This document shows positions 4,024-64,000 of a DNA stretch of 64,000 bases, piece by piece (the stretch's first letter is position 1; every line of letters begins with the position of its first letter). Location: NCBI RefSeq assembly GCF_030144855.1, contig NC_082717.1, positions 106,826,001 through 106,890,000 on the forward strand, in the 5' to 3' direction. A model generated the notes under the pieces. The model ran no database searches. It was given only the letters and a program-made list of their open reading frames with translations, and had not been told where the DNA came from. The DNA is from Hypanus sabinus. Taxonomy: Eukaryota. Made by a program: the position numbers and the translations under genes.

Positions 4024-4065
4024 TCAGCCCTTCCACAGACAATCTGAGTGGCTCTGAAAAGAGCC
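4024..4065 (-). terminator. Histone 3' stem-loop and histone downstream element of H2A copy 1
   Basis: GGCTCTTTTCAGAGCC at 4050-4065 (minus) followed by purine-rich GGAAGGGCTG. Confidence 0.95.
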
Positions 4066-4095
4066 TTTGGGTTTCTAAATTGTCGCTTTGTCTCT

Positions 4096-4527
<432 letters not shown>

Positions 4528-15959: not shown

Positions 15960-16571
<612 letters not shown>

Positions 16572-16601
16572 AGAGACAAAGCGACAATTTAGAAACCCAA
16601 A

Positions 16602-16643
16602 GGCTCTTTTCAGAGCCACTCAGATTGTCTGTGGAAGGGCTGA
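16602..16643 (+). terminator. Histone 3' stem-loop and HDE of H2A copy 2
   Basis: GGCTCTTTTCAGAGCC at 16602-16617, then GGAAGGGCTG. Confidence 0.95.
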
Positions 16644-33082: not shown

Positions 33083-33499
<417 letters not shown>

Positions 33500-39924: not shown

Positions 39925-40620
39925 TATATCATGTCAATCCTGTAATTCTCCAGAGTTTGGATGGTATCGTTGTGTCAAACAGTCCCATGTAGGCTGTAAT
40001 TCTGTTTAGATGGTGATCGCTTTCTTGGATTGTCCCATATAGCCTGTAATTCTCTGGAGTTCTGCTGGTGTTACTCTGACTGTCCCATGTGGGCTGTAAT
40101 TCTCTGAAGTTCAGATGGTGTTACGCTGACTGTCCCATGTGGGCTGTAGTTCTCTGGAGTTCAGATGGTATTACTCTGACTGTCCCATGTGGGCTGTAAT
40201 TCTCTGAAGTTCAGATGGTGTTATGCTGACTGTCCCATGTGGGCTGTAATTCTCTGAAGATCAGATGGTGTTACGCTGACTGTCCCATGTGAGCTGTAAT
40301 TCTCTGGAGTTCAGATGGTGTTATGCTGACTGTCCCATGTGGGCTGTAATTCTCTGAAGATCAGATGGTGTTACGCTGACTGTCCCATGTGGGCTGTAAT
40401 TCTCTGGAGTTCAGATGGTATTACTCTGACTGTCCCATGTGGGCTGTAATTCTCTGAAGTTCAGATGGTGTTATGCTGACTGTCCCATGTGGGCTGTAAT
40501 TCTCTGAAGATCAGATGGTGTTACGCTGACTGTCCCATGTGGGCTGTAATTCTCTGGAGTTCAGATGATGTTACTCTCTCGGACAGCCCATGCAACCTGT
40601 AATTCTCTGGAGTTTGGATG
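39925..40620. repeat. 50-bp minisatellite, 11 core units plus degenerate flanks
   Basis: TGTCCCATGT recurs exactly every 50 bp from 40081 to 40531 (variant TGTCCCATAT at 40031). Confidence 0.97.
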
Positions 40621-43199: not shown

Positions 43200-44216
43200 T
43201 TAAACCCTTTTCCCAGTGTGAACTCGGTAGTGTTTCACAAGGTTGGATGACCGAGAGAATCCCTTCCCACATTCAGAGCAGGTGAATGGCCTCTCCCTAG
43301 TGTGAACTGATTGGTGTGTTTGTAGGTTGGATGACTGAGTGAATCCCTTCCCACACACAGAACATCTGAATGGCCTCTCCCCAGTGTGAACTCGCTGATG
43401 TACCTTCAGCTGAGATAAGCAAGTGAATCCCTTACCACAGTCTGAGCAGGTGAATGGCTTCTCCCCAGTGTGAACAGACTGATGTGCCAAAAAGTGCGAT
43501 GATTGAGTGAATTCTTTCCCACAGTCTGAGCAGGTGAATGACCTCTCCCCAGTGTGAACTCGCTGGTGTACCTTCAGTTGAGGTAACTGAGAGAATCCCT
43601 TCCCACAATCTGGGCAGCTGAATGGTTTCTCCCCAGTGTGAACTCGCTGATGTACCTTCAGTTGATTTGACCGAGAAAATCCCTTCCCACATTCTGAGCA
43701 GGTGAACGGCCTCTCCCCAGTGTGAACTGACTGGTGTGTCAGTAGGTGGGATGACAGAGTGAATCCTTTCCCACAGTCTGAGCAGATGAAAGGCCTCTCT
43801 CCAGTGTGAACTGACTGGTGTGCCAATAATTGGGATGACTGAGAGAATCCCTTTCCACACTCTGGGCATGTGAATGGCCTCTCCCCAGTGTGAACTCGCT
43901 GATGTACCTTCAGTTGAGATGACTGAGAGAATCCCTTCCCACACTCTGGGCAGGTGAATGGCCTCTCTCCAGTGTGAACTCGCTGGTGTACCTTCAGTTG
44001 TGATGATTGAGAGAATCTCTTCCCACAGTCTGAGCAGGTGAACGGTCTCTCCCCCGTGTGAACTCGCTGATGTGTGTTCAGATGAGAAGACTGAGAGAAT
44101 GCCTTCCCACAGCTTGAGCAACTGAACGGCTTCTCCCCAGTGTGAATTTGCTGATGTGACTTCAGTTGAGATGAGTAAGAAAATCTCTTCCCACAGTCTG
44201 AGCAGGTAAACGGCAT
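43200..44216 (-). CDS. Tandem C2H2 zinc-finger protein, 12 fingers, no effector domain visible
   Basis: 12 intact C-x2-C-x12-H-x3-H fingers with TGE(K/R)P linkers; first in-frame ATG at 44216. Confidence 0.9.
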
Positions 44217-44821
44217 CACACCAGTGTGAACTGACGTGTGTCTGTAGGTGGGATGAGTGAGTGAATCCCTTCCTGCACTGAGCAGATGTATGGCCTCTCC
44301 CCAGAGTGAATTCGTTCATGAGTTAACAGATCAGATGACTGAGTAAATGTCTTCCCACACACGGAACAGTTGAAAATCTCTCTCCCTTGTGAACTCACTG
44401 GTTTGTCTGTGGGTCGACTGAGTGAGTGAATCTACTCTCAGACAAGGAGCAGATGAAAGGCCTCTCACTGGTGTGAATTTTCTGATGTATTGTCAGCTTG
44501 GATGACAGAGTGAATCACTTTGCTCAGTCAGAACAAGTGAACCCTCTCCCTGTGGTGTGAACTTGCTGATGTATCTTCAGGCTGGATGACTGAGTAGATC
44601 CCCTCCCAAAAAAGAGGAGGTGACTGGCCTTCCCCCACTGAGTTCACTGATGTGACCGCAGGTCAGCAGAATTAATGAGTCCCTTCCCACGCAAACAGAG
44701 CAGGTGACTGGCCTCTCTCCACACGGTGAACTCACTGGTGTGTTTGCAGTTCGACTGAGTGAGAGAATCCCTTGTTGTTTTGCTTGAGATTCCACTTCAC
44801 ACATTCTTTGCCGTTTCTAAC
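44217..44821 (-). other. Degenerate frameshifted zinc fingers forming the 5' part of the ZNF exon
   Basis: About 6-7 broken finger units (e.g. [26 protein letters not shown]); acceptor TCTTTTTACAG/G with exon start at 44821. Confidence 0.75.
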
Positions 44822-45019
44822 CTGTAAAAAGATTCACAAAAGGCATCAATGGGAGAAGGTCAACATTTCAAATAAGATAATTTTAATCACTATGCTGAGC
44901 TCTGACATCACACTTTTACAGCAAAGTTCAGCCTAAGTTCAAAGAAGTCATTATCTAACTGGGCACAGATCAGGCATCAGGACTGACCATCAAATTCTCC
45001 AACAATTTTCCTACGTAAC

Positions 45020-47530
45020 CGTGTAACAATTATAGCATGGAAACAGGCCATCTCGGCCCTTCTAGTCCGTGCCAAATGCTTACTCTCACCTAGTCCCACA
45101 TACTTGCACTCAGCCCATAACCCTCCATTCCTTTCCTGTCCATATACCTATCCAATTGTACTTTAAATGACAATATCGAACCTGCCTCTACCACTTCTAC
45201 TGGTAGCTCGCTCCACACAGCTACCACTCTCTGAGTAAAGAAGTTCCCCCTCGTGTTACCCCTAAACTTTTGCCCCCTAACTCTCAACTCATGTCCTCTT
45301 GTTTGAATCTCCCCTACTCTCAATGGAAAAAGCCTATCCACGTCAATTTATATCTATCCCCCTCAAAATTTTAAATACCTCCATCAAGTCCCCCCTCAAG
45401 CTTCTATGCTCCAAAGAATAAAGACCTAACTTGTTCAACCTTTCTCTGTAACTTAGGTGCTAAAACTCAGGTAACATTCTAGTAAATCTCCTCTGTACTC
45501 TCCCTATTTTGTTGACAACGTTCCTATAATTTGGTGACCAGAACTGTACACAATACTCCAAATTTGGCCGCACCAATGCCGTGTCCAATTTTAACATTAC
45601 ATCCCAACTCCTATAGTCAACGCTCTGATTTACAAAGGCCAACATACCAAAAGCTTTCTTCACCTCCCTATCCACATGAGATTCCACATTCAGGGAACTA
45701 TGCACTATTATTCCTAGATCACTCTGTTCTACTGCATTCTTCAATGCACTATCATTTACCATGTATGTCCTATTTTGATTAGTCCTACCAAAATGTAGCA
45801 CCTCACACTTATCAGCATTAAACTCCATCTGCCATCTTTCAGCCCACTCTTCTAACTGGCCTAAATCTCTTTGCAAGCTTTGAAAACCTACTTCATTATC
45901 CACAACACCACCTATCTTAGTATCATCTGCATACTTACTAATCCAATTTACCACCCCATCATCCAGATCATTAATGTATATGACAAACAACATTGGACCC
46001 AGTACAGATCCCTGAGGCACACCATTAGTCACCGGCCTCCAACCTGACAAACAGTTAACCACCACTACTCTCTGGCATCTCCCATCCAGGCACTGTTGAA
46101 TCCATTTTACGACTTCAATATTAATACCTAATGATTGAACCTTCCTAACTAACCTTCCATGTGGAACCTTGTCAAAGGCCTTACTAAAGTCCATATGGAC
46201 AACATCCACTGCTTTACCCATCAATTTTCCTAGTAACCTCTTCAAAAAATTCAATAAGATTTGTCAAACATGACCTTCCACGCACAAATCCATGTTGACT
46301 GTTCCTAATCAGACCCTGCCTATCCAGATAATTTAATATACCATCTCTAAGAATACTTTCCATTAATTTATCCACCTTTTTGAACAATGGAACCATGAGC
46401 AATACGCCAATCCTCCGGCACCATCCCTGTTTCTAATGACATTTGAAATATTTCTGTCAGAGCCCCTGCTATTTCTACACTAACTTCCCTCAAGGTCCTA
46501 GGGAATATCCTGTCAGGACCCGGAGACTTATCCATTTTTATATTCTTTCAAAGCACCAGTACTTCCTCTTCTTTAATCATCATAGTTTCCATAACTACCC
46601 TACTTGTTTCCCCTACCTTATACAATTCAATATCCTTCTCCTTAGTCAATACCGAAGAAAAGAAATTGTTCTAAATCTCCCCCATCTCTTTTGGCTCCAC
46701 ACATAGCTGTCCACTCTGATTCTCTAAAGGACCAATTTTATCCCTCACTATCCTTTAGCTATTAATATAACCGTAGAAACCCTTTGGATTTATTTTCACC
46801 TTACTTGCCAAAGCAACCTCATATCTTCTTTTAGCTTTTCTAATTTCTTTAAGATTCTTTTTTACATTCTTTATATTCCTCGAGCACCTCATTTACTCCA
46901 TGCTGCCTATATTTATTGTAGATCTCTCTCTTTTTCTGAACCAAGTTTCCAGTATCCCTTGAAAACCATGGCTCTCTCAAACTTTTAACCTTTCCTTTCA
47001 ACCTAACAGGAAAATAAAGATTCTGTACCCTCAAAATTTCACCTTTAAATGACTTCCATTTCTCTATTACATCCTTTCCATAAAACAAATTGACCCAATC
47101 CACTCCTTCTAAATCCTTTTGCATCTCCTCAAAGTTAGCCTTTCTCCAATCAGAAATCTTAGCCCTGGGTCCAGACCTATCCTTCTCCATAATTATATTG
47201 AAACTAATGGCATTGTGATCACTGGACCCAAAGTGCTCCCCAACACATACCTCCATCACCTGACCTATTTCATTCCCTAACAGGAGATCCAACACTGCCC
47301 CTTCTCTAGTTGGTACCTCTATGTATTGCTACAAAAAACTATCCTGCACACACTTTACAAACTCCAAACAATCCAGCCCTTTTACAGAATGGGCTTCCCA
47401 GTCTATGTGTGGAAAATTAAAATCTCCCACAATCACAACTTTGTGCTTACGACAAATATCTGCTAACTCCTTACAAATTTGCTCCTCCAATTCTCACTCC
47501 CCATTAGCTGGTCTATAATACTCCCCTATA
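45020..47530 (-). mobile_element. CR1 LINE, 5'-truncated (about 2.5 kb), in the ZNF intron
   Basis: Endonuclease (GSSDHNAI), RT ([28 protein letters not shown]) and 3' UTR. Confidence 0.95.
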
Positions 47531-47904
47531 AGACTGTCTTCAGTCTGTGAATTGGCTCAGTTTGCCTCTCTCCACTAGTATTATTTCATGTTGAGATCAC
47601 ATGCCTCAGTGCTACAAAGATCACATGATATTATATGGCTGCTCGAGCAGATTTCCTAATTACTCTGACCTCCCCCCTCACCCTGCTGAATAACACTGGT
47701 GAACTTTTTCTCATTAGAGTGTGGCACTTTAGTGATGTGAAATTTACAGGTCACTTGTTACCCAGGACAAAGGAGTTTGATATCATTTTCACTCAGAGAG
47801 AATGGTACAAAACATGTTCTCACAAGTACAAAGGCCCAGAACAAGAGGAGGTAGAACAAAGGTTTTTTTCTCAAGAACTAAAGCTCATGGAAAGAATTTG
47901 GTGC

Positions 47905-49225
47905 TTTTTTTTTGGTATTTTTATTAAGTGGAAGGTAGACTCTTTATCAGAGACTATCTTGGAACTATTTTGTTCCAAGTTCCTAATCCTTGGATTGAGA
48001 TAGTTGGAGCTCCACAGTATTGGAGAGATCCATCCACTCCTATTCCCTCCACCTGTGTTTCCAGACCGGTAGGGAAACACTGGAAGTGTCACCCATGGCA
48101 CCTCTATAACCAGAAAAACCCATTAGCGAGAGACACATCTATCCAGGGCCTGGGTATGGATCGAGGGGAAAGGACCAGGTCTGTCCTGGATTTGCAGGGC
48201 CACAGTGTGTCCGGAGCTCACAGCAATTGTCTCTCACTTGTGGTGCAGACACCGATGCTGATGAAACACCCACTCGGAGCTCCGATCCTGCCTCCTTCTT
48301 CTTTTGTGCTAATAGCGGCTTGCACCTCTCAGGAAGCTGCATTACTGCCTCCTACTGTAGGGGAGAATGAGGGGAGCTCTGACAGGGATCAGATCTAAAC
48401 CTGTTTTAAATAAAAAGCTCACCAGGGACCCACGCAACTTAATCATCCCTGCCTCAGGTGCCAGAATATCTTGCAAACTAGGTACCCAGAGCTCCCCAAT
48501 AATTGCCCAAACAGCTTCCCACATCACAACATATATCTGTGGTACACCACACCTTGATCCCATATTCCACCATCTCTGGGACCTTAAAAAAATCACACCA
48601 CCCATTCCCATGTTTAACAACAAGTGCCAAAGTGGAGTGCAACCCCGTATGTCCAAACCTCAGTCTCATCAAACACACATCTTCCCTCCTGTTCCTTCAA
48701 AAGGTGCCTCCCCTGGACTGATAGAAACAAATTGTAATACCACCTCCCTCTCCCACAATTTCTGCTATTTCTGAATCCCACTCAACCTAACAATAGATTT
48801 GACTTCATACTTTCCCGTATTGACTACAATTCCTGCCTCCGACTTAGTAAGTGGCTGCTTTGCGAGAACGTAGGCCTATTCATTACCCGATACGCCCACA
48901 TGTGCATTTACCCAACAGAACTGGAGTACTATTCCCGCACTCTCCAGACACCTCCATTCCTAACCCTGCCCTTGAACGTTTCGATTCCAAACTCTGCAGT
49001 ACCGAGGCAGATCACGACTCTGTTCAGCTTAACTCATTCATCTCAATACAGACTAACGATAATGGCCAGAAATTCTGCTGTACAGACGGCTGACAGATGG
49101 GTTGTCCTTTTCCCCACCTCAGCATTAAACCAGGGGATGAATACCCCAGAGCTCACCCGGTTACTCACCGGGTCTTCAGCACCATCTGTGAAGATGGGCA
49201 AAAAGAAAACCTGCTGCAGCTGTAA
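47905..49225 (-). mobile_element. I/Nimb-clade LINE 3' fragment with RNase H
   Basis: IFTDG...SAVCTAEFLAI, WVNAHVGVSGNE*AYVLAK (RNase H), RLRFGHTGL followed by a Cys-rich motif. Confidence 0.75.
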
Positions 49226-49319
49226 ATGACCAGACACCCTCTCACCACCTACAAGATCCTGACTGTCCCCCAGTAACGTCAAACCTATTCCCTCTTCCAG
49301 AAATTTCCACAGGAACTCC

Positions 49320-49560
49320 AGGCTAGCTCACAGTTGGGCTAATTCGTAAATCCCAGGACATCTCTCGCACATATTCCCTAATTATCCGCCGAAACAGTTA
49401 CCACTCCGCTACCCGCTCCTACCTGCGGCCGATCCGCCAGAGCCTTTCGTCCACTGAGCGCATGCGCGATTTTCGGAACCCAGCTGTGATCTTTACGCCT
49501 GCGCATTTGATCGCTGGGTCACCGGCGGCGAATTCTGGAGCGCGGAGACCTCTGGGTAGA
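49320..49560 (-). promoter_or_regulatory. Putative CpG-island promoter and first exon of the ZNF gene
   Basis: CpG-rich; NRF1 palindrome GCGCATGCGC at 49458-49467 and a second near-site at about 49496; minus-strand donor candidates at about 49420 (CAG/GTAGG) and about 49330 (GTGAGC). Confidence 0.55.
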
Positions 49561-49759
49561 CAAGCTGCCAATCAGAATCAGGTTTAATGTCACTGAAATT
49601 AACGCCATAGAATTTGTTAACATTGCGGTCGCAATACACAAAAGATAACTGTGAATTACAGAAATTGTATATATATGTATAGTTAAATTATAGAAATGAA
49701 GAAGTAGCGAGGTAGTGTTCATGCGTTCAACGTCCATTCAGAAACTGGATGGCAGAGGG

Positions 49760-50557
49760 TATTACGTACCAGCAGCAATAGATCACAAATTGAGTCAGGT
49801 TTTAATGTTAAAACCACTATATTTATTAGTATCTACTTAAAATGTAAGAGATTAAACAAAATAAGATTAAGTTAACAGTGCTATGTATGTGTGTGGCTTC
49901 CAAACTTAGGAACAGTTCTCAAAGTCTTAAGACAGCAAACCAGAAAGGTCCAGTAATCCACGGAATGAGTGAGAGGAGGTACTGGTAAATCCACTTTAAA
50001 ATGTAAAAAGGAGGTAATCACAGAGAATTCCACAAGTTCCATGCTGGGAAATCGAAATATCAGTCGCCGAAGATCTTATCCATCGAGTCGTCCGGAAATC
50101 CACGTAGAAATATCACAAGGTGACAGTCAAGGAATGTTCCTTAGCATCAGTGGTCACCAAATAACATACCTGAAACCATGTAAGGATTAACAAAAGTGGT
50201 CGCCACAGAACACTCCAACAAAATCCACGTATGGATGATACTAAGTAACAGTCACATATCCAAAGTGCATGGTGTGCCGTTAATCAACCCAATCCTTTGG
50301 GCATGGGAAAGTATCAGACTTTACCCATTGTCACAGNNNNNNNNNNNNNNNNNNNNNNNNNNNNNNNNNNNNNNNNNNNNNNNNNNNNNNNNNNNNNNNN
50401 NNNNNNNNNNNNNNNNNNNNNNNNNNNNNNNNNNNNNNNNNNNNNNNNNNNNNNNNNNNNNNNNNNNNNNNNCTTGTTATACTGACGTCATAGTCCCGCC
50501 TCATCCAGGCGTTTTAAAGTGACCCCCCACAGTAAACGAAACTATGTTCATGTAACA
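49760..50557 (-). repeat. 3' LTR of the Gypsy element (contains assembly gap 50337-50472)
   Basis: T(A)TTACG...GTAACA; homologous to 56207-57641. Confidence 0.9.
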
Positions 50558-50729
50558 CCTCCACACAAAAAGGGAAAATTTTGATCTGTAAGAGCAAAAT
50601 TGTAACTGCAAACTAGAACATGTGAAACAATGTATTTATGGTTGCCATACAGCATAGTACAGACTAATATAACATATTGCAGGAGCGTATACCAATAGTA
50701 AATTCCACCCCAGTATTAAAAGTACATCG

Positions 50730-52080
50730 CAAACTTAACATCTGGAAAGACAATCGGCAATTATATTATCTCTGCCTTAAATGTGAGTTATCATGAGATC
50801 ATACTCCTGCAAAATCAAACTCCGATTCAACAACCATCTATTTTTGTGTGTTCAGCTTATTCAGAAACACCAATGGATTATGATCTGTATACACAACAAG
50901 TGGTTTCTGAGCTGTGCAAACATACACATCAAAATGCTGCAAAGCCAACATAGCTGATAATGATTCCTTCTCTATGGTGGAATAATTTATTTGATGCTCA
51001 TTGAATTTCTTGCACAAGTACGCCACAGGATGGTCAACATCATCATAAACATCCCTTTAACACTGCTCCTGCAGCTTCATCACTGGCATCTGTGGCTCTG
51101 GAAAATGGCTTTGCAAAGTCAGGTGACCTGAGCGCAGGTTGGTGACACAAGATGGCTTTCAATTCCTCAAATGCCTCCTGACAACGTTTCATCCAAATAA
51201 ACTTTTCACCCTTCTTCAGGAGGTTAGTCAATGGGAGAGCAATATCAGCAAAGTTCTTACAGAACTTGCGATAATATCCGACCATTCCCAGGAATCTTCT
51301 AAGAGTCTTTTTACTGGTTGGAATGGGAACCACCGAAATTGCCTGAACTTTTGCCTGGACAGGAGCCAGCCTGCCCTGACCTACAACATACCAAGACAGG
51401 TCACAGTGGCATGGCCAAATTCACTCTTAGCTAAGTTAACTGTAAGGTTGGCCTTGGAAAGCCTTTCAAACAGCTTTCCCACTGCAGTGACATGGGCCTC
51501 CCAGGTGTCATTCCCCGTGACCAAATTATCAATATAGGCATCTATGTGTTCTAACCCTTGAATTACAGAATTAATCATTCTCTGGAATGTTCCTGGAGCA
51601 TTTTTCATTCCAAATGACAGAACATTGTATTCATACAACCCAGAAGGTGTTACAAATGCAGAAATTTCTCTACCCCTATCTGTTAATGGAACATACCAAT
51701 ACCCTTTGAACAGCGATTTTTGTAAGAAACTTAGCCTTTCCAACCTTGTCTACTCAATCATCCACTCTAGGGATTGGGTAAGCATCTGTTTCTGTTATTG
51801 CGTTCACCTTCCTGTAATCAGTGCAAAACTTGGTACTACCTTCTGCTTTAGGTAGCATAACATAAGGTGAGCTCCAATTTGAAATAGAATGCCTAATAAT
51901 ACCATTTTCTAACATATGCTCAATTTCTTGTTCAGCAAGTCTACATTTTTCAATATTCATGTGATACGGATGCTGTTTTACGGGATTGACAACACCGACA
52001 TCAACATCATGTGAGGTTACTCTGGTTCTTTTTGGAACATCAGGGAACAAATTCCTCAATTTCATGATCAACTGCTTCAT
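50730..52080 (-). pseudogene. pol: Gypsy RT and RNase H (frameshifted)
   Basis: FCTDYRKVN, DAYPIPR, SFGMKNAPGTFQR, YIDN (YIDD mutated), TDASD, YSTIEKE, VYTDHNPL. Confidence 0.92.
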
Positions 52081-52299
52081 TCACTACTGCTGCTGTGGCT
52101 ATAAATGAGCCAATTTCTCATCAAGACTTTCCAAAATAGTTGAATTTGTCAAATGGCTGAAATAATGTTGGATTTAAAATAGGCCTCAGATGGATCAGCT
52201 GGTAAATTTCCAGAGAGTTTAGCTTCATTGATATTGACAACAATGGTCACAGCTTCTGTCTGTTTCTCATGGTATAGTTTAAGCATGTTTACATGATAA

Positions 52300-53430
52300 A
52301 GCTGCATTGGCCTCCGTCTATCCTTTGACTACATAATCTACATCAATGACTTTAGACACAATTTCGTAGGGACTATGAAACTTAGCTCGCAGAGGGTTTG
52401 TTTGCACAGGGTAAAGAAGCAATTCCTTATCTCCCGGCTTGAATGACCTCCTTCTGGCTTCCATATCATACCAAGTTTTCATTCTTTCCTGGGCGGATCT
52501 TAAACTTTCCTTTGCTAAGTTTCAAGCCCTTTGCAATCTGTCCTTGAATTTTAAAACATAGTCTAACAAATTAATATGCAGGTCATTGTTAATCCACTGT
52601 TCTTTTAATAACACCAAAGGTCCTTGGACCTGGTGTCCAAACACAAGTTTGAAGGGGCTAAAGCCTAGGAACTCTTGCACTGACTCCCTCATGGTAAATC
52701 AAAGCAAGTAAACTCCCTCATCCCAATCCTTCTCATTTTCAATACAGAATGGCCTAATCATGGTTTTGAGGGTAGAATTAAATCTTTCTAGGGCCCCTTA
52801 GGATTCTGGATGGTACACAGACAACATAATTTGTTTGGCTCCCAGTTTGTAAACTATCTACCAGAATAATCCTGACATAAAATTACTTCCTTGATCAGAC
52901 TGGATTGCTTTAAGCAAACCAAATAGGATGAAAAGCCTTATGAGAGCCCTTGGCACAGTAGAAGCTTTTATATTCCTAAGAGGTATTGCTTCTGGAAGTC
53001 TAGATGCTGTACACATGATGGTTAGCAAATACTGATGGCCAGCTTTAGACTTTGGCAATGGGCCAACACAATCGCCAATAACTTTTGAAAAGGGTTCACC
53101 AAATGCAGGAACAGGCTGTAGTGGAGCCACTGGGGTGACCTGATTAGGTTTAAACACAACCTGACAAGTGTGAGAAGTTCAGCAAAATGTTCCAACATCT
53201 TTCCTCAAACCAGGCCAGAAGAATTATTTAAAAATCTTATCCACAGTTTTATTCACACCTAGATGGCCACCCAAGGGCATACTATGGGCCAAAGTTAAAA
53301 TCTCATTCCTGTAGACTTTAGGAACTATAACCTGGTGAACAATTGCCCATTCCTCACTTGCAGGAATATCAGGTGGTCTCCACTTCCTCATTAACACTCC
53401 ACCCTTGATATCATAACCTACTGGCACTTT
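52300..53430 (-). pseudogene. Gypsy integrase, upstream of RT
   Basis: AHSMPLGGHLGVNKT (zinc-binding HH), DCVGPLP, PEAIPL, IQSDQGSNF. Confidence 0.92.
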
Positions 53431-53644
53431 CTCAACCTCATCGCCTGGAAGAACTTTTTCTCAAAGTAACAATCTCAGGGTCTCTGGTCTGTTCCACTAT
53501 AAACTCCTTCCTGGACAAAGACAAATCTTTATTGTCAATCCTAACACAAGGATCCTGGTCCAATAATGAATGAAAGGAAGTCACTGACAAGTCATTGTCA
53601 CTTTCCCCATGATGGGTTAAAGAACCAGCTGAAATAGAAAACAC

Positions 53645-54157
53645 TGTGGAGTCTGGTATTGTTATAAAGTAATGCTATTTATTAGTAACTATGCAATACA
53701 GTAATATGAATGCAGATATATCAAACAGATTAGCAATGATTATATACATATATATAAGTGTGGAAATAGGAAAACCAAGCTTCTTCAAGCCTAGGGGTAA
53801 ACAGATTCAGTCTTACGATGATGAGTGAAGTTCAGTTTAGTTCATGGTATTGAGTTGAATAGTGTGGGCACACGAATAACTCCCCACCGGTCATACCCTT
53901 TTCACACTGCGAGAGCCACTGATCGATCCTCCAAACCTACCTTTTCTGTGGCCACAACAAAGCTCATTCAGTGTCCAAAAACCATGTGTCTGTAGGTCCA
54001 CCAGCAGACCTCCCATTTATCTCCCCGTGCTGAGCACCAGCTGTCCATCAAACAACTCCTCCCTTCTCTCTCTGTAAGAATACAGAAGCTGACAGTGTCT
54101 TTGCAAAAGTGTAAACACGCTTGCAGAGAAACCATAACACCATCTCCAAGCAGGCTT

Positions 54158-54197
<40 letters not shown>

Positions 54198-54278
54198 TAA
54201 CAAGGTGTCCGGGGTTGGCAACTCCCTCTCTCTTTTCAAAAAACACAGTTCATAGGGGTAATTCAGCACCCTGTCACC
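53645..54278. mobile_element. Nested LTR-like insertion within pol
   Basis: Non-coding block with TGT start, (CT)n and minus-strand AATAAA that interrupts the PR-INT spacer; no clear TSD. Confidence 0.5.
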
Positions 54279-54399
54279 ATCAAAACCTGAGTCCTGATTT
54301 GGGCTGTCATGGGTAGTGGAACTATGCTGCACAGAACCATCCGCATTGGCAAGCTTCTCGGCCATAGCTCTAGATACTGCACAGGTTGTATAAACATTA

Positions 54400-54745
54400 G
54401 AATCCATCTTTGGGTCATCAGTGATTGGCTTAGTCGTCAAATACACCACAGGAACAATTGTGCCACCTGTTATGTCATTCCCTAACAACAATGAAACGCC
54501 TTGGGTTGTAGTCCTATCTTTACAGGTCCTGAACCTAACTCGGACTTCAAAATTACCTTGTGCAGAGATACAGAAACAATGTCAGCCCCAATTCCTTGAA
54601 TAAGATTTACCTCACCAGTGGCAGTCTCATCACTAAACTCTAGAACACTGTCTAACAAGAGTGACTGAGAAGCCGCAGTATCTCGAAGAATTTTCACTGG
54701 TACCGGGGATGACCCCTCATTCACTGAAACAAACCCCTCCGACAC
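54400..54745 (-). pseudogene. Gypsy aspartic protease
   Basis: VKILRDTAASQSLLL (DTG mutated to DTA) and LLGND. Confidence 0.85.
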
Positions 54746-54779
54746 AAAAACAATGAATTCTTTCCTAACCAGGTCAGAT

Positions 54780-56097
54780 GTCTCAATCTTTGATGGAGCT
54801 TCATCAGAAAGTCCAGAACCCTGTTGGCATATAGGTGTTTCAACACGTTGAATACAAGCTTCTGGAACTATCTCCTTTTCCTTCTTCTTCTTCTTCTTCT
54901 TCAGAATCAGAATCAGAATCAGACTTTAATCGCCAAGTACCTGTACACATACAAGGAATTTACTTCCAGCAGATGTTGTCTCTCTGCTCATAACAGATGA
55001 TAAATATAAATAAAAATATAGATTATACATACAAGTAGTGCAATCCAAGTAACGTGACCAGGTTTCTTGCAATAGTGACAAGCAGGACCAGAATGTTTCT
55101 CCTCTAATTGCTTCCCTTCATCCTTACCTTTGACACTAGTCCCAGATTTGATTTCTGGTTTACCCATGCTACCCTTTTGGAAGGTCTTACTTGTGGTAAC
55201 TTAGCCTTGTGGGTTAGGGCAAACTCATCTGCTAACTTAGCAGACTCTTGTAAAGTTGCTGCATCCTTCTCATCCAAATATGTCTTTATGTCATTATGGA
55301 TGCTCCTTTTAAATTCTTAAATTAAAACTAACTCTTTCAGTTTGTCAAAATCATTGTCCACATTTTTAGATATGCACCATCGTTCAAAACAAACGGTCTC
55401 CTCATAAGCAAATTCCACATGAGTCTGGTTCACAGATTTCCTCAGATTCTTAAAACATTGTCTATAGACTTCTGGAACTAAGTCACAGGCTTTAAGCACA
55501 GCCTGTTTCACAATGTCATAATTAGCTGCATTGTCAACTGACAGGGATGAATAAGCCTGATGAGCCTTACCTTAATTACACTCTGTAACAGGAGAGGCCA
55601 ACTGCCTCTTCACCACAGTAGGCTCTGAGCAACTTTCTCAAAATGCTGAAAGTATTTATCAACCTCAGTCTCATCAAATGGAGGGGACAATTTAACTTTC
55701 CGACTGGGAACAAACTTATCAGCAGAGTCAAACATTGGACCTCTTGCTGTAGCTTCTCTAACGTCTCTAGCTCAAACCTCCTTTCTTTGTCTGCTTCCAC
55801 AGCTTCAAACTGCCTTTCTCTTTCTCTGTCCGCTAATCTAAGTTTCTCTAACTGCAATTATTCCATTCTGTACTGATGGTCCTCCAGTTTACCTCCAGGA
55901 AACCACTCTAACACCCACTCTTCAAACACATTCGTAGATACGTAATGCTCAACTATTCTCCCCTGAATCCCTGCCTTTCTTATAACTGGTTTCACTGTAA
56001 TAAAACCCAACTTTTTAGCAATGATCAACAACTCATTATTTCTGGCATCCTCTAATGCCTCAGAGGTTGGTGATGCCAGAAATTTATCAATATCCAT
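54780..56097 (-). pseudogene. gag: Gypsy gag (coiled coil, capsid, CCHC knuckle), frameshifted
   Basis: LEKLRL..RERERQFE, KQAVLKACDLVPEVYRQCFKNLRK, CHYCKKPGHV at about 55052-55081 cut by a short (TTCTGA)n-tailed insertion at 54907-55051. Confidence 0.85.
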
Positions 56098-56188
56098 TGC
56101 TGCTGGTTTATAACCACAAGTCAATCAAAAAGGAAGTAACCAATCAGATCGTTAATCAATCAATCGATAGGCTCCATTTTTATTCAAA

Positions 56189-56205
56189 ATCCCGGATGAC
56201 CCCCA
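56189..56205 (-). promoter_or_regulatory. Primer binding site, tRNA-Pro-like
   Basis: Minus strand TGGGGGTCATCCGGGAT versus tRNA-Pro PBS TGGGGGCTCGTCCGGGAT, directly inside the 5' LTR. Confidence 0.8.
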
Positions 56206-56206
56206 A

Positions 56207-57641
56207 TTTATGCAATAGATCACAAAATGAGTCAGGTTTTAGTGGTAAAACCACCATATCTATTAGTATCTACTTAAATTGTAAGATATTAAACGAAATA
56301 AATAGAGGTTAACAGTGTTATATATGTGTGTGGCTCCCAAACTGTCGCTTAGGAACAGTTCTTAAAGCCTTAAGTGTAAAGGGGGTTTCTTCTTTTTTCT
56401 TTGTTACTGTGTATGTAATCAAAATGGCTTCTTTGTTTTGTTAAAAGCAGGAATGCTTCTTTGTTGCGAGAGAGTGCTGGAAGCTTGTTTGGTTTAAAAT
56501 TGACTGGTAACAAGAATTGTATTCCTTTGTAAACCAATTGGGATTAATGTTGTTCTTTCTTCTGAGTCTGTAAGCTATTGTTGGCGGGCTTTTGGGGAGA
56601 TCGGTGCGAAGGGTTGAGAGAGAGGACGCAATGCTGTAAGCTGGATGAGGAACGGACCCCAAGTGGGGGTCCGAGGCCAGGAGGTACTCCGAGGAGAGGG
56701 GATGAAGCTAGATGTGCTTGGTTGACCACTTCAGATGGTCCTAAGCTGCGAGTCGAGGAGTTCGGAGGGAATGGAATGGCAGCCAGAAGACTTCAGTAAT
56801 TGAGCTCCAACAGTCGTGCATGAAGTGGTTTGGACTTTGATGTTTGGCGCCTTTTCTTTATTTTTTTCTTCATATATACTGTATCATTATTAATCACTTA
56901 GTTATAGTAACCTTTATAAATTGTACTCATTTAATCACATATGCAAACTGTCTGTTTTTGGGCGAGGCGGGGACATCACACAGCATCCACACCAGCTGAT
57001 TACCCAGTTTGGTGGGGCCGAAGGCTGCTCCCCCTAGACGAGAACGAGCTGAGCGAGCCTGAGGCAACCTTGGGGGTTACATAAGATTGAAAACTAGAAA
57101 GGTCCAGTAATCCACGGAATGAGTGAGGGGGACTGGTAAATCCACTTTAAAATGTAGAAAGGAGGCAATCACGAAGAATTCCACAAGTTCCATGCTGGGA
57201 AATTGAAATATCAGTCGCCGAAGATTCTATCTGTTGAGTTGTCCCGAAATCCACATAGAAATATCACAAAGTGACAGTCACAGAATATTCCTTAGCATCA
57301 GTGGTTACCACATAACATGCCCAAAACCATGTAAGGGTTAACAAAAGTGGTGGCCACAGAATACACCAACAAAATCCACGTATGGATGATACGAAGTAAC
57401 AGTCACATATCCAATGTGCACGGTGTGCCATTAATCCTTTGGGTATGTGAAAGTATCAGACTTTACCCTTTGTCACAGCAGGCTATATATATATTCTCTC
57501 TCTCTCTCTCTCTCTCTCTCCCCCCCCCCCACCCTTTCTTTCTCTGAACGTCCCAACGGTCTGTCGCAGATTGTTATACTGACGTCATAGTCCCGCCTCA
57601 TCCAGGCGTTTTAAAGTAAACAAAACCATGGTCAAGTAACA
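56207..57641 (-). repeat. 5' LTR of the Gypsy element, split by a nested solo LTR
   Basis: Homologous to 49760-50557 once 56375-57085 is removed. Confidence 0.9.
56375..57081. mobile_element. Nested solo LTR (707 bp) of a different family
   Basis: TGTAA...TTACA termini, TSD TAAG/TAAG; absent from the partner LTR. Confidence 0.92.
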
Positions 57642-57645
57642 AGGG

Positions 57646-58720
57646 AAAGAAGCTGAGTGTGTGCCTTTGGGCTCCTGTACTTCCTTTCTGATGGTGGCAG
57701 TGAGAAGAGGAGATGCCCTGCATCTTTAATGATGGAAGCTACCTTTTTGAGGCCTGGCTCTTTGAAGATGTTCTGGATCTACGGAGGCCAGTGCCCATGA
57801 GTTGACTACTTTTATTACTTTCTGCAGCCTACTTCGATCCTGTACAGTAGTGCCAATATCGCTCCACCCCCAGCCCCCGCCACACCAGACAATGTTGCAG
57901 CCACTTAGAATGCTCTGCATGGTACATCTGTAGAAATTTGCTGGTGTTGTAGGTGACATACTAAGTCTCCTCAAATGCCAAATAAAATGTAGCCACTGTG
58001 GTGCCTTCTTTGTGACTGCATCGATATGTTGGGACCAGGATAAATCCTCGGATACATTGATACCCAGGAACTTGAAATTGCTCACTCTCTCCACTTCTGA
58101 TCCTTTTGTGAGGACTGCTGTGTGTTCCCCTGTCTTACCCTTCCTGATGTCCACAATCAGTTTGGTCTTATTGTCATTGAGTGCAAGGTTGTTGCTGCGA
58201 CACCATTCAGCTAGCTGGAATATCTCACTCCTGTACACCCTCTTGTCACCTTCTGAGATTTTCCAACAATATTTATATCAGCAAATTAATAGACGGTGTT
58301 TGAGCTGTGCCTAGCCACACAGTCATGGGTGTAGAGAGAGTAGAGCAGTGGGCTAAGCACACCTACCTGAGGAGTGCCAGTGTTGATTGTCAGCAAGGTG
58401 GAGATGTTATTACCAATCTGCACAGATTCTGGTCTTCCAGTGAGGAAGTCAAGGATCCAATTGCAGAGAAAGGTACAGAGGCCCAGGTTATGGTGCTTTT
58501 TGACCAGACCTGAAGGGATGATGGTGCTAAATGCTGAGCTGTAGTCAATAAACAGCATCTTGACATAGGTATTTGGATTGTCGTGTTGAGCCAATGAGAT
58601 CCCATCCACCTTAGACCTATTGTGCAATGGGCAAACTGCAGTGCGTCCAGGTCTTTGGTGAGGCAGGAGTTGATTCTAGCCATAACCAACCTCTGAAAGC
58701 ACTTCATCACCATAGATGAG
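57646..58720 (-). mobile_element. Rex1/Babar-type LINE RT fragment
   Basis: [36 protein letters not shown]. Confidence 0.85.
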
Positions 58721-59249
58721 AGTGCAAAATGTCTGCAACCACCAGTTCCATGCCAGCTACCTCAGTGTTATATGTAAAAATCTCAGTTGCTAATTTAATA
58801 CAGCAAACTCCCATAAACAATATTCTCAGTATCAACAGGCATTCCATGTGTCAAATATCAAAGTCCAATCCACTTACAAATGTGGATAGAAAACACAAAA
58901 GGTTCTGCAGATGGTGGAAATATAGAGCGACACAGACGTGTTAGAGGAACTCAGCAGGTCAGACAGCATCTAACCAGAAAAAAACTGTCTGTGCATGGTG
59001 AAGAGTCATAGTCTGAAGTAGCAACTGTTTATTCCTGTCCACAGATGCTCCCTGACCCTCTGAGTTCCTCCAGCATTTTGCAAAAGTAAACATTTTTTCA
59101 GTCAATCATTTTCAAAGTGTTGCCGATCTTTCATTCGCAACCACGTCCTCCTGGTCTGATTCTCTCCTTCTCTTCCTCCTTGTAAACTGTAACCCCCACC
59201 AATTCCACGAACCCCAAAGGCCAGACTTGTGCAGGCCCCTCTTTGGTTT

Positions 59250-60700
59250 ATCACCATGTCCCATCGAAGATTACCCAGCTCTTCCTCCATTTCATTGACC
59301 ACTACTTTGATGACGTGCTGAGCTTGTCAATTTCATTAACTTTGCCTCTAGCTTCCACCCTGAACATAAGTCCACTTGGTCCATCTCTGACACCTCCTGC
59401 CCCTTTCTCGATCTCTCTACTTCCATCTATCGAGACAAATTGTTAACCGACATCTTTTATAAACCTACCTATTCCCACGGTTATCTTGACCATATGCTTT
59501 CCCACCCAATCTCATGTATAATGGTATTGCCTGTTCTCAGTTCATTCGTCTCCGTCGCATCTGTTCTCAGGAGACTGCTTTCCTCAAAGCTGTCCTCTGT
59601 CTTCAAAAAACCATATATCCCTTCCTCCACTGTGGATGCTGCTCTCACTCACATCTCCTCTATTTTCTGAATATCTCTACTCACCCCATCTTCTCTTTAC
59701 CTTAACAGTGATAGAATTCCTCTTTTCCTTACCTACCACCGCATGAGCTTCTGCATCCATCACATCATCATCCACAGTTTCCATCATCTCCAAAGGGATC
59801 CTTCCACCAAACATGGCTTTACCTTCAACCCCTCCCCCCTACCCTCTTTCCACATGGATCACTCCCTCCGTGATTCCATTAGAGACATACAGCAGAATAC
59901 AGGCCCATCAGCCCACAAAGCTGTGTCGAACATGTCCCTACCTTGGAACTACCTAGGCTTTACCCATAGCCCTCTATTTTTCTAAGCTCCATGTAGCCAT
60001 CCAGGAATCTCTTAAAAGACCCTATCATTTTCCCTTCCACCACTGCCACCAGCAGCCCATTCCACGTACTCACCACTCTCTGCATAAAAAAACTTAACCC
60101 TGACATCTCCTCTGTACCTACTTCCAAGTACCTTAAAGCTATCCCTCTCATGCTAGCCAATTCAACCCTGGGGAAAAGCCTCTGACTATCCACATGATCA
60201 ATTCATTGTTGATTTGTCCCTCCCTACTAATGTCCCTCCCAGCACTTAACCCTAGCAAGTGTCCAAAGTGTTACACCTGCCCATTCACATCATCCCTCAG
60301 CTCCTTTCAGGCCCCTGAACAGTCCTATCAGGTGAGTCCTTTTTGCTCGGGGCTTCGATTGTGTCCCATGCTCCCAATGCAGCCTCCTCTACATTGCTGA
60401 GATCCATCGTAAATTGGGTGGGAGGGGGCACTTAATTGAGAATTTCCGCTCTATCCACCAATAGCGGAATATCCCAACGGCCAAACATTTTAATTCCCAT
60501 TCTGGCATGTTGGTCCATGGCCTCCTCGTGTGCTACAATGAGGCCACCCTCAGGGTGGAGGAGTGACACTTTATGTTCTGTCTGGGTGCCCCTCAATCTG
60601 ATGTCATGTATATTGATTTCTTATTTCAGTAAAAAAAAACTTCCACTCTCCCTTCCTCTATTCCCCACTCTGACCTTTTGCCTCTCCTCACCTGCCTTTA
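59250..60700 (+). mobile_element. Penelope-like fragment with nested CR1 3' end (59880-60200, minus)
   Basis: TDIFYKPTYSHGYLD, SQFIRLRRICS, CPKCYTCPF. Confidence 0.8.
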
Positions 60701-61221
60701 CTCCCCAGCAGAGAGGCCATTCCTCCTCTCTGGTCCCTGTCAGTGTTTCTGTTCTGTCTCCTCTCATCACCCTGTAGCGATGTTCTTTTCTCTCTCTCTT
60801 TCCATTCACCCAGCCTTCCCTGAAATCCATCCCAGCTGCTCACCTCTGGCTGCCCCTGTGGAGACGGGTTCTGAATGGTCATCACTGGATGAGGAAATGA
60901 CATCACTGCTCAACTGGTCTCTGACGACTTGCACTCATACTTCCTTCAAACTTTATTTCCTTGTGCCCCAGGGTAACAGACCAGCCCCTGTCACCAAACT
61001 GCTCTGAAACTTCTGCTCAGGATTGTCAATTTTATATAGATATTGGCCAATTGAAATCTGCACAGCTTTTAATCCCTTACTTGCAAACAATACTTACCAT
61101 GATAAATTCTTACAGGTCATAATAACCAACAAAACTACATGCATTATACAGACACAAAATGCTAGAGGAACTCAGCAAGTCAGGGGAATAAACCATCAAG
61201 TGTCGGGCTGAGACCCTTCAT

Positions 61222-63060
61222 CACCCACTCCCACCCCTCCCCATCTTAGAGTCTCCCCATTCCCCCAGTCTCTGGATCATCCCTCTCACCAGTCTCTGTG
61301 TCACTCCACACCCCTCTCCCCTGTCCCTTCACTGGGTCACTCACCTTTCTCTCCCCCACGTCTCTGGTACGCCTCCATCAGCCCACCCTCCCATTGCTGC
61401 CCCTTGTCTCTGCAATGTCTCTCACCCATTTAACCTCCCCCCGACCCTCCTTCACTAGGTCACTCTTCTGCCCTCAGCTGTCTGTAGGTCAACTCATCCC
61501 CAATCAGTCTGGTCCCTTCCCTTCCCCACCTCTCCACCTCTTGGTTATCCACTTCCCACAACACCCACAACTTATATCACTGGGTCACCCTAAGCCCGTT
61601 CTAAATCCCCACTCACCATGCCTCTGGGCTACTCCCTGTCTCACTTCAATTCCTGATTCTGGATTGCCCCCTTCCCTGGGTCTATCCACCAGCCCTCTCT
61701 GGGTCATCCTTCTCCACCACTCTCTCCATGTTCCCCCTTCTCCCTTCTTGCCCCTTTCCCCCATTCCTTCCCTGTCCCTTGATTGCCTCATTCCATCCTC
61801 ACCCTGATGTTTCTGTGCCACTCCACCCACCCACATTTGGATTGCCACTTTCTACCCTTGTGTCTGGTCAGGGTCACCCCCTTCTCACTTCCTCTCCCAT
61901 CGCTGAATCTCCCCTTCCTTCCTCCCCCATCTATGGGTCATCTCCTTCCCCTCTTCTCGAGATCTCCCTTTCTCTCATCTATCTCTCCCTCCCAGCCCTG
62001 TCTCTGGGTCTGCCGCTTCCCCCTTTTCCTTGTCTTTGGTCCTGCCATTCCCAGTGTCTTCTGTCTCTTGGTTGCCGCCACGGACCATCTCTGGGTCTGA
62101 CCTCCTTGTCCTGCCTCCCATCCCTCTCAATTCCCCATCTGTGTCACTGCTTTTCCCTGTCTCGGTGACATCCTCTTCCCCACTATGTCCAAAGGATATC
62201 CCGCCTCACTTTCACGCCCATGTCTCTGGGAAACTTCCTTTCCCCCACCCCACCCTCCAATCCCATCCATCTCTGGAACACTTCAGCCTCATCTCTGGGA
62301 TTCAGCCTTCTTCTTCTTCTTCCCCATATTACCAGGAGCCAACTCCTCATCTCTGGTAGGCCAACTATGAAACGCGCCTTCCAGTCCTCCATCACACCCT
62401 GCCCCTTCGTTCATCCCCCCACCCATCTCTGGGATGTCCCTTGCCCCCACCCCCACCCCAACCCCGTCTCATCTCTCAGACTCGAACTTCCCCCTTCTTA
62501 CCCATCCCACCCTCCAATTTGGGATGCTCCCTCTGCCCCAGTTTTGGATACCACTTTCTTCTGTACTTCCCTCCACATCTGGTCACCTCGTATCCTCACA
62601 TTCCCCATTTCATCTCTCAGATGATCCTAATGTCAGTATTTTCCCATGTCTGACATTCAACTCCTTTACACATTTCTGGGGAAACACTTCCCCATGCACA
62701 ATGGGATGCCACATTCCTCTTCCTCTCACCATACTATGCCTCTGGAACACCTCCCTCCAATCTCTGGGATACCCTTCCATGACCCATCTCTGGAATGCCC
62801 CCTTTCCCCCTCACACATCTGCCTCTAGGATACTCCGTGCTCCCACTTCCCCCTTTTTGCTGCTTTTGCCTCCCCTCCATCCCCACATATCCTTGTCATT
62901 TTCCAAAAAACCCCTTTCCTCTGTCTCTAGTCGCTCTGTATCTCCACATACCCCTTGTCATCTTTGACAACACCCCTTGCTTCCTTTTCTAGTTGACCCA
63001 TATCCCCACATACTCCTTGTTGTCTTTGGCAAGACCCCTCTCCTCCAATTCCACTTCCAG
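61222..63060. repeat. Polypyrimidine low-complexity tract
   Basis: About 1.8 kb strongly C/T-biased on the plus strand, with recurrent CATCTCTGGG-like motif. Confidence 0.8.
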
Positions 63061-63064
63061 CTTT

Positions 63065-63480
63065 GTTCAGAATTTTTACTTTGCTCTTGAGATAGCCCTC
63101 CATCATTTGTAACTGGTCATTTTGTGTAGTCCTGGATCACCAGACTTGAATGCCACAGATCTAGCCCTCAGCAGACTATGAACCTCCAGATTCATCTCCA
63201 GCTTTTGATATGTTCTTGTAGGCATACATATATCCACACATGTTTTAATGAAGTCAGTGGCAACTGTGGTGTAGTCATTCAGAATCAAAGAGGAATCCCC
63301 GAATACAGTCTAGTCCACCGATTCAAAGCAGTCCTGTAAGTGCTCCTGCACCTCCCTTGTCCAGACCTTCTTGGTCCTCACTACTTACTAGTGGTGCGGT
63401 CTTCAATCTCTGCCTATACTCAGGGTGTAAAAGTACAGCCAGGCGATCAGACTTTCCAAAGTGTGGGCATAGGATGACAC
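63065..63480 (-). mobile_element. Rex1/Babar-type LINE fragment
   Basis: EVHSLLRARSVAFKSGD and upstream GKSD...CFESVD motifs. Confidence 0.7.
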
Positions 63481-64000
63481 TGTTGATGCTCTCTAACTTC
63501 CCTTGTCAGCCATGATTGCCTCATCCTTCCTTGAGAAAACTTCTTTGGGATGACATTTCTGTGTCTTTGTGATTACTCTCAAAAACTCCAGCAATTGCTG
63601 CTCCATCATCATCCCAGTTAGCATTCCCTTCCATTCGACGTTTCCAGCTCCTCTCTCATGCCCCTGCAGTTACCTTTCATCATCATCATTATTACATGCC
63701 AAGTCATATGACATAGGCGATCAAGGTCTCCAAAGGTTTCCACAGAAGTGGTTTGCCATTGTCTTCTTCCAGGCAGTGTCTTTACAAGATGGGTGAGCCC
63801 AGTCATTATCAATACTCCTCAGTGATTTTCTGCCTAGCATCAGTGAACACATAACCAGGAATTGTGATATCCACCAGCTGTACATACAACCATCCACCAC
63901 CTGCCCCTATGGCTTCATGTGACCCTGATGGAGTGGCTGAGCTGGTGCTACACCTTGCCCAAGGATGACCTGCAGGCTAGCAGAGAAAAGCAGCTCCTTT

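Follow-up and report, generated by a model that had tools for sequence, protein, structure and literature searches.

Introduction

Does a retrotransposon that lies directly upstream of a zinc finger gene, and in the same orientation, act on that gene? The question is raised by a stretch of 64,000 nucleotides of the stingray Hypanus sabinus (assembly GCF_030144855.1, contig NC_082717.1, positions 106,826,001 to 106,890,000 of the forward strand; hereafter the window), in which a long terminal repeat (LTR) element of the Gmr1-like group is followed on the minus strand by a tandem C2H2 zinc finger (ZNF) gene. In the outline given by the literature, an ancestral capture of SCAN gave the amniotes their SCAN-(KRAB)-ZNF genes (Emerson and Thomas 2011, via PMC4592553; bioRxiv 10.1101/2025.03.03.638093), and essentially all reports of SCAN-ZNF genes concern amniotes (PMC4592553; bioRxiv 10.1101/2025.03.03.638093). 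The initial annotation of this locus saw in it the geometry that could give LTR-driven or gag-ZNF chimeric transcripts in a lineage without known SCAN-ZNF genes, and held promoter donation to be more plausible than protein fusion. As to the lineage it agrees with the literature, which reports no SCAN-ZNF genes in cartilaginous fish (bioRxiv 10.1101/2025.03.03.638093; PMC4592553).

We conclude that the locus, which is from a dasyatid stingray, is probably a neutral pile of nested transposons beside a poly-zinc-finger gene of an ordinary kind without KRAB, and we infer that the LTR plays no part in the expression of the gene. A functional interpretation of the geometry of element and gene is unsupported and unlikely. 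Positions below are counted from the first letter of the window, and the features are collected in Table 1.

A decayed Gmr1-like retrotransposon

The element is bounded by a pair of LTRs with a CCCT target-site duplication, and its coding remnants read on the minus strand in the order gag, protease, integrase, reverse transcriptase (RT) and RNase H. By tblastn it is collinear with residues 164-1550 of a 1551-amino-acid relative of the same domain order. Its Pfam families, RVT_1, RT_RNaseH, RT_RNaseH_2 and Integrase_H2C2, are of the Ty3/gypsy type (RVT_1 at 51384-51749; RNase H at 50841-51420; Integrase_H2C2 at 53227-53460, 5.7e-6; rve at 52861-53178, 3.1e-7), and a Pfam scan of the element's pol found neither RVT_2 nor any copia-type family; the protease remnant (54336-54799) has no Pfam match. 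Gmr1-like elements are defined by an integrase that precedes the RT, together with enzymes of the Ty3/gypsy type (bioRxiv 10.1101/2025.03.03.638093), and the element, which has both, is therefore Gmr1-like. The initial annotation had named it so, and its membership of the Gmr1-like Ty3/gypsy group is confirmed, at the level of sequence, by the LTRs and their duplication, the domain order, the Pfam families and the SCAN homology of gag.

Every gene of the element is broken. Set against the intact relative of 1551 residues, it shows at least 8 changes of frame and, within the stretches that align, at least 12 stops, the integrase stretch alone having 6 by tblastn; a microsatellite has also expanded within it near 54000-54250. 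The two LTRs are 88.8% identical (Kimura two-parameter distance 0.123; 633 aligned sites), which at an assumed 1-2.5e-9 substitutions per site per year would make the element roughly 25-60 million years old. Directly after the 5' LTR stands TGGGGGTCATCCGGGATT, which we take to resemble a tRNA-Pro primer site.

Homology of gag to SCAN

The link between SCAN and the capsid of Gmr1-like gag, on which the initial annotation drew, holds for the present element. The SCAN-like part of gag spans 55197-55571 overall and is split in two by an in-frame stop at 55317-55319; with another in-frame stop at 55858-55860 and at least two frame changes, the gag is indeed frameshifted, as first described. SCAN homology was assessed through natural intact relatives. 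The piece at 55320-55571 matches positions 1-48 of Pfam SCAN with E 0.024, below the Pfam cut-off, and a single gag piece searched against the PDB gave chance matches only. The piece at 55107-55316 has no match in Pfam or the PDB, and it extends the family alignment in the same frame as the preceding piece.

Against 1.84 billion representatives, the gag piece found 1644 proteins at E <= 0.001, and every one of 40 intact gag relatives (46-64% identical) matched Pfam SCAN, the best at 1.4e-16. When a profile of the gag family was run against the PDB, its top three matches were the SCAN structures 3lhr, 2fi2 and 1y7q (ZNF24, ZNF42/MZF1 and ZNF174). As a matter of homology it is thus confirmed that the gag of this element carries a SCAN-homologous capsid C-terminal region. 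C2H2 fingers were present in none of the 150 best gag relatives.

The nearest named relatives of the gag are from the rays Pristis and Mobula. In Mobula hypostoma and M. birostris (P0127 and P0272) there is a single-piece open reading frame (ORF) of 316 amino acids, 60% identical to the gag piece, with SCAN as its sole Pfam family. It occurs on a single contig only, within a proprotein-convertase gene on the opposite strand, and is kept to at least 90% from one species to the other. Either a domesticated gag or a mere shared remnant may account for it. Two arthropod proteins also stand among the best matches of the gag piece, one from the sea spider Nymphon striatum (P0125, 64% identity) and one from the shrimp Palaemon carinicauda (P0122, 48% identity), the latter with SCAN confirmed, which is odd given that the gag family was described from deuterostomes.

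Insertion into a LINE and the order of events

When the element and one CCCT are deleted, the flanks rejoin in one frame that ends in ..FFPSAIQFLNGR-stop, which we take to be the C-terminus of ORF2 of a long interspersed element (LINE). Because the flanks rejoin as one LINE reading frame, the element must have been inserted into a pre-existing LINE, and the argument from the junction rests on the restored frame together with the 4-bp duplication. A comparison at the DNA level with other LINE copies in the window, as empty sites, found no copy near enough. The distance between the 3' LTR and the NRF1 site of the putative ZNF promoter, both on the minus strand and initially put at about 300 bp, measures 293 bp, and most of it is the 3' tail of this LINE.

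The closeness of LTR and promoter would be unreal if the assembly were misjoined within the 3' LTR, where the sole run of N in the window is found (50337-50472, 136 N). We regard such an artefact as highly improbable. The flank ending at 50336 aligns to the 5' LTR up to 57478 and the flank at 50474-50520 aligns to 57571-57617, so that the join is collinear, both flanks keeping strand and order; the same 4-bp duplication stands at the outer ends of both LTRs; and flanks that rejoin in one LINE reading frame would not be expected from a misjoin. The interval of the 5' LTR that corresponds to the gap is 92 bp long, against 136 N. The gap falls in the non-coding 3' LTR and no reading frame spans it, the similarity to coding sequence having come to its end at 50741.

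The 5' LTR is itself interrupted by a nested element of 707 bp, probably the solo LTR of another family, which lacks an ORF and matches nothing else in the window. We propose the following order of events. A LINE would have landed upstream of the gene, some 0.1-0.2 kb from its short CpG-island promoter; the Gmr1-like element would then have integrated in the LINE 3' tail, in the same orientation, creating the CCCT duplication; a further LTR-type element would have landed in the 5' LTR, later to be reduced to about 0.7 kb; and the entire Gmr1-like element would have decayed afterwards.

The zinc finger gene and its putative CpG-island promoter

The tandem C2H2 gene is found downstream of the element on the minus strand, as the initial annotation had it. 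Its 12 intact fingers, joined by TGEKP-type linkers, cover 43218-44204 (finger regular expression; Pfam zf-C2H2 in 12 stretches, E 2.3e-86), and all cysteine and histidine ligands are retained. The 1017 bp of the coding region hold no disruption, against at least 8 in about 600 bp upstream. The exact product of 338 amino acids is recorded only in GCA_030144855.1, as a single-piece gene of 1017 bp whose protein starts at 44216, without N-terminal extension or longer form, and no gene is recorded in the 10 kb upstream of it. The array is the only one in the window. Among the decayed units that precede it, one is still intact in another frame (44306-44368); a Pfam zf-C2H2 match falls on 44219-44431, and the 84-bp repeat family reaches 44625. 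The candidate splice acceptor that was annotated at 44821 has its AG at 44823-44822, and a search of minus-strand segments of 44822-49571 found no KRAB, SCAN or other N-terminal exon. The best identities of the 12-finger ORF (59-62%) are with proteins of Pristiophorus, Scyliorhinus and Mustelus, in a homologue search that is too generic to place the gene and gives a hint of shark affinity only.

Between the acceptor and the element lies a short CpG island of about 300 bp, with a ratio of observed to expected CpG (o/e) of 1.18-1.26 and a G+C content of 0.52-0.59. Its segment 49351-49550 holds 21 CpG with an o/e of 1.26, the highest in the window, where the mean is 0.32 and only the histone genes come near; the corresponding values are 0.23 for the interior of the element, 0.16 for the LINE and about 0.6 for the LTRs. 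Such CpG content points to a long-term lack of germline methylation at the island. The NRF1 palindrome GCGCATGCGC (49458-49467) occurs once in the 64 kb, where 0.11 occurrences are expected; an inverted CCAAT (49568-49572) stands some 100 bp upstream of it, and a candidate donor, CAG/GTAGGA, with 49423 as the last exon base, stands downstream. The short island is credible as a promoter with a first exon, and it would serve the ZNF gene. Transcription of the gene would most likely start from this island, where the NRF1 and CCAAT motifs lie; splicing would join a short first exon, ending at 49423, to 44821; and the ATG at 44216 would open translation, the dead finger units acting as leader.

The predicted intron holds a LINE fragment with endonuclease and RT. 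The LINE 3' ends at 45016-45686 and 961-1617 are 90% identical, which suggests a fairly young LINE family, and a mere 200 bp or so separate the former copy from the ZNF acceptor downstream of it. A reading by eye of 49046-49327 and 48481-48696 as RNase H or LINE tail was dropped, as these segments have no Pfam match and no homologue, and 47521-49329 is left without annotation.

These same data allow another reading. The array of fingers would be a pseudogene in decay or a non-coding transcript, the island would be an orphan or the property of another transcription unit, and the LTR would have no ZNF promoter beside it. Stops and frameshifts run through some 600 bp of finger units ahead of the ATG at 44216; a frame opened at the ATG of the first exon and continued by splicing at 44821 closes after 29 codons, so that the leader we propose contains an upstream ORF; part of the 4.6-kb 'intron' is LINE; and the recorded 338-amino-acid product may be a mere automatic prediction. 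We nevertheless find a pseudogene unlikely, given the contrast between 12 undisrupted fingers with all their ligands and the heavily disrupted stretch beside them, an AATAAA some 200 bp after the stop codon, and an island whose CpG content implies that germline methylation has long been absent.

Does the element act on the gene?

All features of the arrangement, with the element upstream of the ZNF gene and co-oriented with it, are where the initial annotation had placed them. The interpretation that was given to them would have the co-oriented 3' LTR donate a promoter to the gene, or transcripts of the element read through and splice into the finger exon, which would be a present-day replay of the geometry proposed for the birth of SCAN-ZNF genes. 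There is something to be said for it: the LTR is in sense orientation upstream of the gene, its GC-box, cyclic AMP response element (CRE)-like and TATA-like motifs (50477-50500) are kept, the donor at 49423 and the acceptor at 44821 are both good, and the model in the literature starts from the capture of a Gmr1-like element at a site upstream of a ZNF gene (bioRxiv 10.1101/2025.03.03.638093). Yet the element is old and dead, and the gene has a CpG island of its own. The intact AATAAA of the 3' LTR (49827-49822) lies upstream of this island, so that transcripts of the element would end before reaching it, and the recorded protein carries no extension. The presumed start site of the LTR, about 25-30 nt past the TATAA at 50477-50481, is hidden under the N gap. 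We therefore hold donation of a promoter, and chimeric transcripts with it, to be unsupported and very unlikely.

The conservation of these motifs between the two LTRs is compatible with chance. A perfect block of 47 bp common to both LTRs was considered as a sign of selection and rejected, since a run of this length arose in about 20% of simulations (P ~0.2). Repeats make up at least 43% of the window by self-comparison, and more than 50% once the Gmr1-like element is added, and because more than half of the window is repeats, a transposon edge less than 300 bp from a promoter, in either orientation, is unremarkable; one such juxtaposition is expected by chance. An excess over chance is not demonstrated for the juxtaposition of LTR and ZNF promoter itself, though its component features are real.

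As for a gene of the SCAN-ZNF type, the SCAN-like region (55197-55475) is broken and stands about 11 kb from the fingers, and the recorded product consists of fingers only. Protein fusion, which had been judged the less plausible from the outset, is implausible with a gag that is both stopped and frameshifted.

Some points weigh against a purely neutral reading. As a raw observation, every recognisable retroelement fragment at 45000-58800, whether of the two LINEs, of the Gmr1-like element or of the nested LTR, lies on the minus strand, like the ZNF gene. The LTRs keep an intermediate CpG content (o/e ~0.6), and the block with GC box, CRE and TATA is identical between them, over a run length compatible with chance. 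The early stop reached from the first-exon ATG suggests that the true exon structure may differ from the one proposed, and weak LTR-initiated or read-through RNAs may be formed. There is in our estimate a very slim chance that transcripts still reach the finger exon in some tissue, whether from the 3' LTR, old as it is, or by read-through of the element, and that Gmr1-like copies are placed non-randomly in sense orientation upstream of ray ZNF genes. If it were true, this cartilaginous-fish locus would be a living example of the pre-capture state from which the amniote SCAN-ZNF genes arose.

Setting of the locus

The ZNF gene is located within a histone cluster (Table 1). The exact H2A protein of the window is matched only in GCA_030144855.1 and GCA_048418815.1, which are Hypanus sabinus and Hemitrygon akajei, respectively (PMC13023373). 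An annotated protein of Pristiophorus (P0117) is an H2A fused to a finger array, and a similar neighbourhood may exist in sharks. Scans for tRNAs and Rfam families found no tRNA-derived short interspersed element and no RNA gene inside the region of the element and the ZNF gene, their sole matches being the histone stem-loops elsewhere.

A 38-bp minisatellite, which also shows a period of 114, forms several arrays at 5033-6250, adjoining the first H2A gene, and a tandem repeat of 10.9 copies of a 50-bp unit, 92% identical, lies at 40031-40574. At 60000-64000 the G+C content rises to 0.50 with a very strongly negative GC skew (-0.38 to -0.44), and the plus strand has long overlapping open frames rich in proline, serine and leucine, with a 62-bp repeat at 62879-63046.

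Table 1. Positions of the element, the ZNF gene and neighbouring features in the window (UTR, untranslated region).
Feature	Position	Strand	Remarks
LTR retrotransposon	49760-57641	-	LTR pair and target-site duplication
5' LTR	56206-57641	-	starts TGTTAC at 57641; interrupted by nested element 56375-57081
3' LTR	49760-50557	-	TGTTAC...GTAATA
Target-site duplication CCCT, 5' copy	57642-57645	-	
Target-site duplication CCCT, 3' copy	49756-49759	-	
Primer-binding-site-like TGGGGGTCATCCGGGATT	56188-56205	-	directly after 5' LTR
3' LTR motif, GC box	50495-50500	-	
3' LTR motif, TGACGTCA	50483-50490	-	
3' LTR motif, TATAA	50477-50481	-	
3' LTR motif, AATAAA	49822-49827	-	
Nested element in 5' LTR	56375-57081	-	707 bp, TGTAA..TTACA ends, CTTA duplication
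gag remnants	55048-56124	-	SCAN-homologous capsid C-terminal region 55197-55475; CCHC knuckle 55048-55092
Protease region remnant	54336-54799	-	tblastn to residues 425-584 of relatives
Integrase remnants (H2C2 finger, core, C-terminal)	52218-53457	-	located 5' of RT
RT and RNase H remnants	50741-52152	-	Pfam RVT_1 1e-17, RT_RNaseH 9.7e-16; tblastn
Interrupted LINE, upstream part (RT)	57646-58761	-	RT 57729-58675; Pfam RVT_1 58289-58675, E 1.5e-7
Interrupted LINE, 3' tail (end of ORF2 and 3' UTR)	49631-49755	-	continuous reading after removal of the element
Short CpG island, putative ZNF promoter and first exon	49330-49630	-	CpG o/e, NRF1 and CCAAT motifs
LINE fragment (endonuclease and RT) in putative intron	45016-47520	-	RVT_1 E 3.6e-24; Exo_endo_phos_2 E 2e-6
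Candidate splice acceptor AG	44822-44823	-	follows pyrimidine tract; exon start 44821
Decayed finger units	44217-44821	-	about 7 units in three frames, with stops and frameshifts; three-frame reading
ZNF coding region	43200-44216	-	338 amino acids; ATG at 44216, stop 43200-43202
AATAAA	42992-42997	-	about 200 bp past ZNF stop codon
H3 gene	33086-33499	-	9.7 kb downstream of ZNF
H2A gene, first copy	4096-4485	-	identical to second copy, inverted orientation
H2A gene, second copy	16137-16568	+	identical to first copy, inverted orientation
Rfam histone 3' stem-loop, first H2A gene	4025-4070	-	
Rfam histone 3' stem-loop, second H2A gene	16597-16642	+	

Comparison with known systems

As it stands, this is an ordinary nested transposon insertion of little significance. 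The locus is a typical nested pile of LINE, LTR and LTR beside a CpG-island ZNF gene in a histone cluster, and adds one decayed Gmr1-like copy with a SCAN-like gag to a ray genome in which such elements are already expected. It shares with other Gmr1-like elements the LTRs with a short duplication, the SCAN-homologous gag with its CCHC knuckle, and a protease and then an integrase before the RT and RNase H, whereas it differs from them in being dead in every gene, in its microsatellite expansion, in the nested insertion of its 5' LTR and in the 11% divergence of its LTRs.

With the capture of SCAN in amniotes, as far as the cited sources outline it, the locus has in common a Gmr1-like element with SCAN-like gag upstream of a tandem C2H2 gene in the same orientation. 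In contrast to that capture, the stingray locus is without KRAB, its SCAN-like region is broken, no fused product is recorded and the host is a cartilaginous fish; moreover, the approximately 11 kb to the fingers hold pol, an LTR that has a poly(A) signal, the tail of a LINE, and then the promoter and intron of the gene itself. One juxtaposition is too little to bear an argument on the birth of SCAN-ZNF genes, and the locus is a neat illustration of the geometry of that model rather than evidence of an ongoing process. Its wider value is as a concrete locus at which to ask whether the arrangement proposed for the birth of SCAN-ZNF genes ever gives chimeric RNAs.

LTR-derived alternative promoters and chimeric transcripts of LTR and gene are well known for the endogenous retroviruses of mammals. 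The stingray LTR resembles these in its sense orientation, in its TATA-like and CRE-like motifs and in its position, a few hundred bp ahead of a first exon, but it is old, and a canonical CpG-island promoter stands between it and the gene. The gene itself may be compared with the KRAB-less poly-C2H2 genes of sharks and rays. It differs from them in having an array whose 5' third is dead and in needing an internal ATG as start codon, and it is like them in its plain build, several of the proteins with the best identity being little more than arrays of fingers with a short leader.

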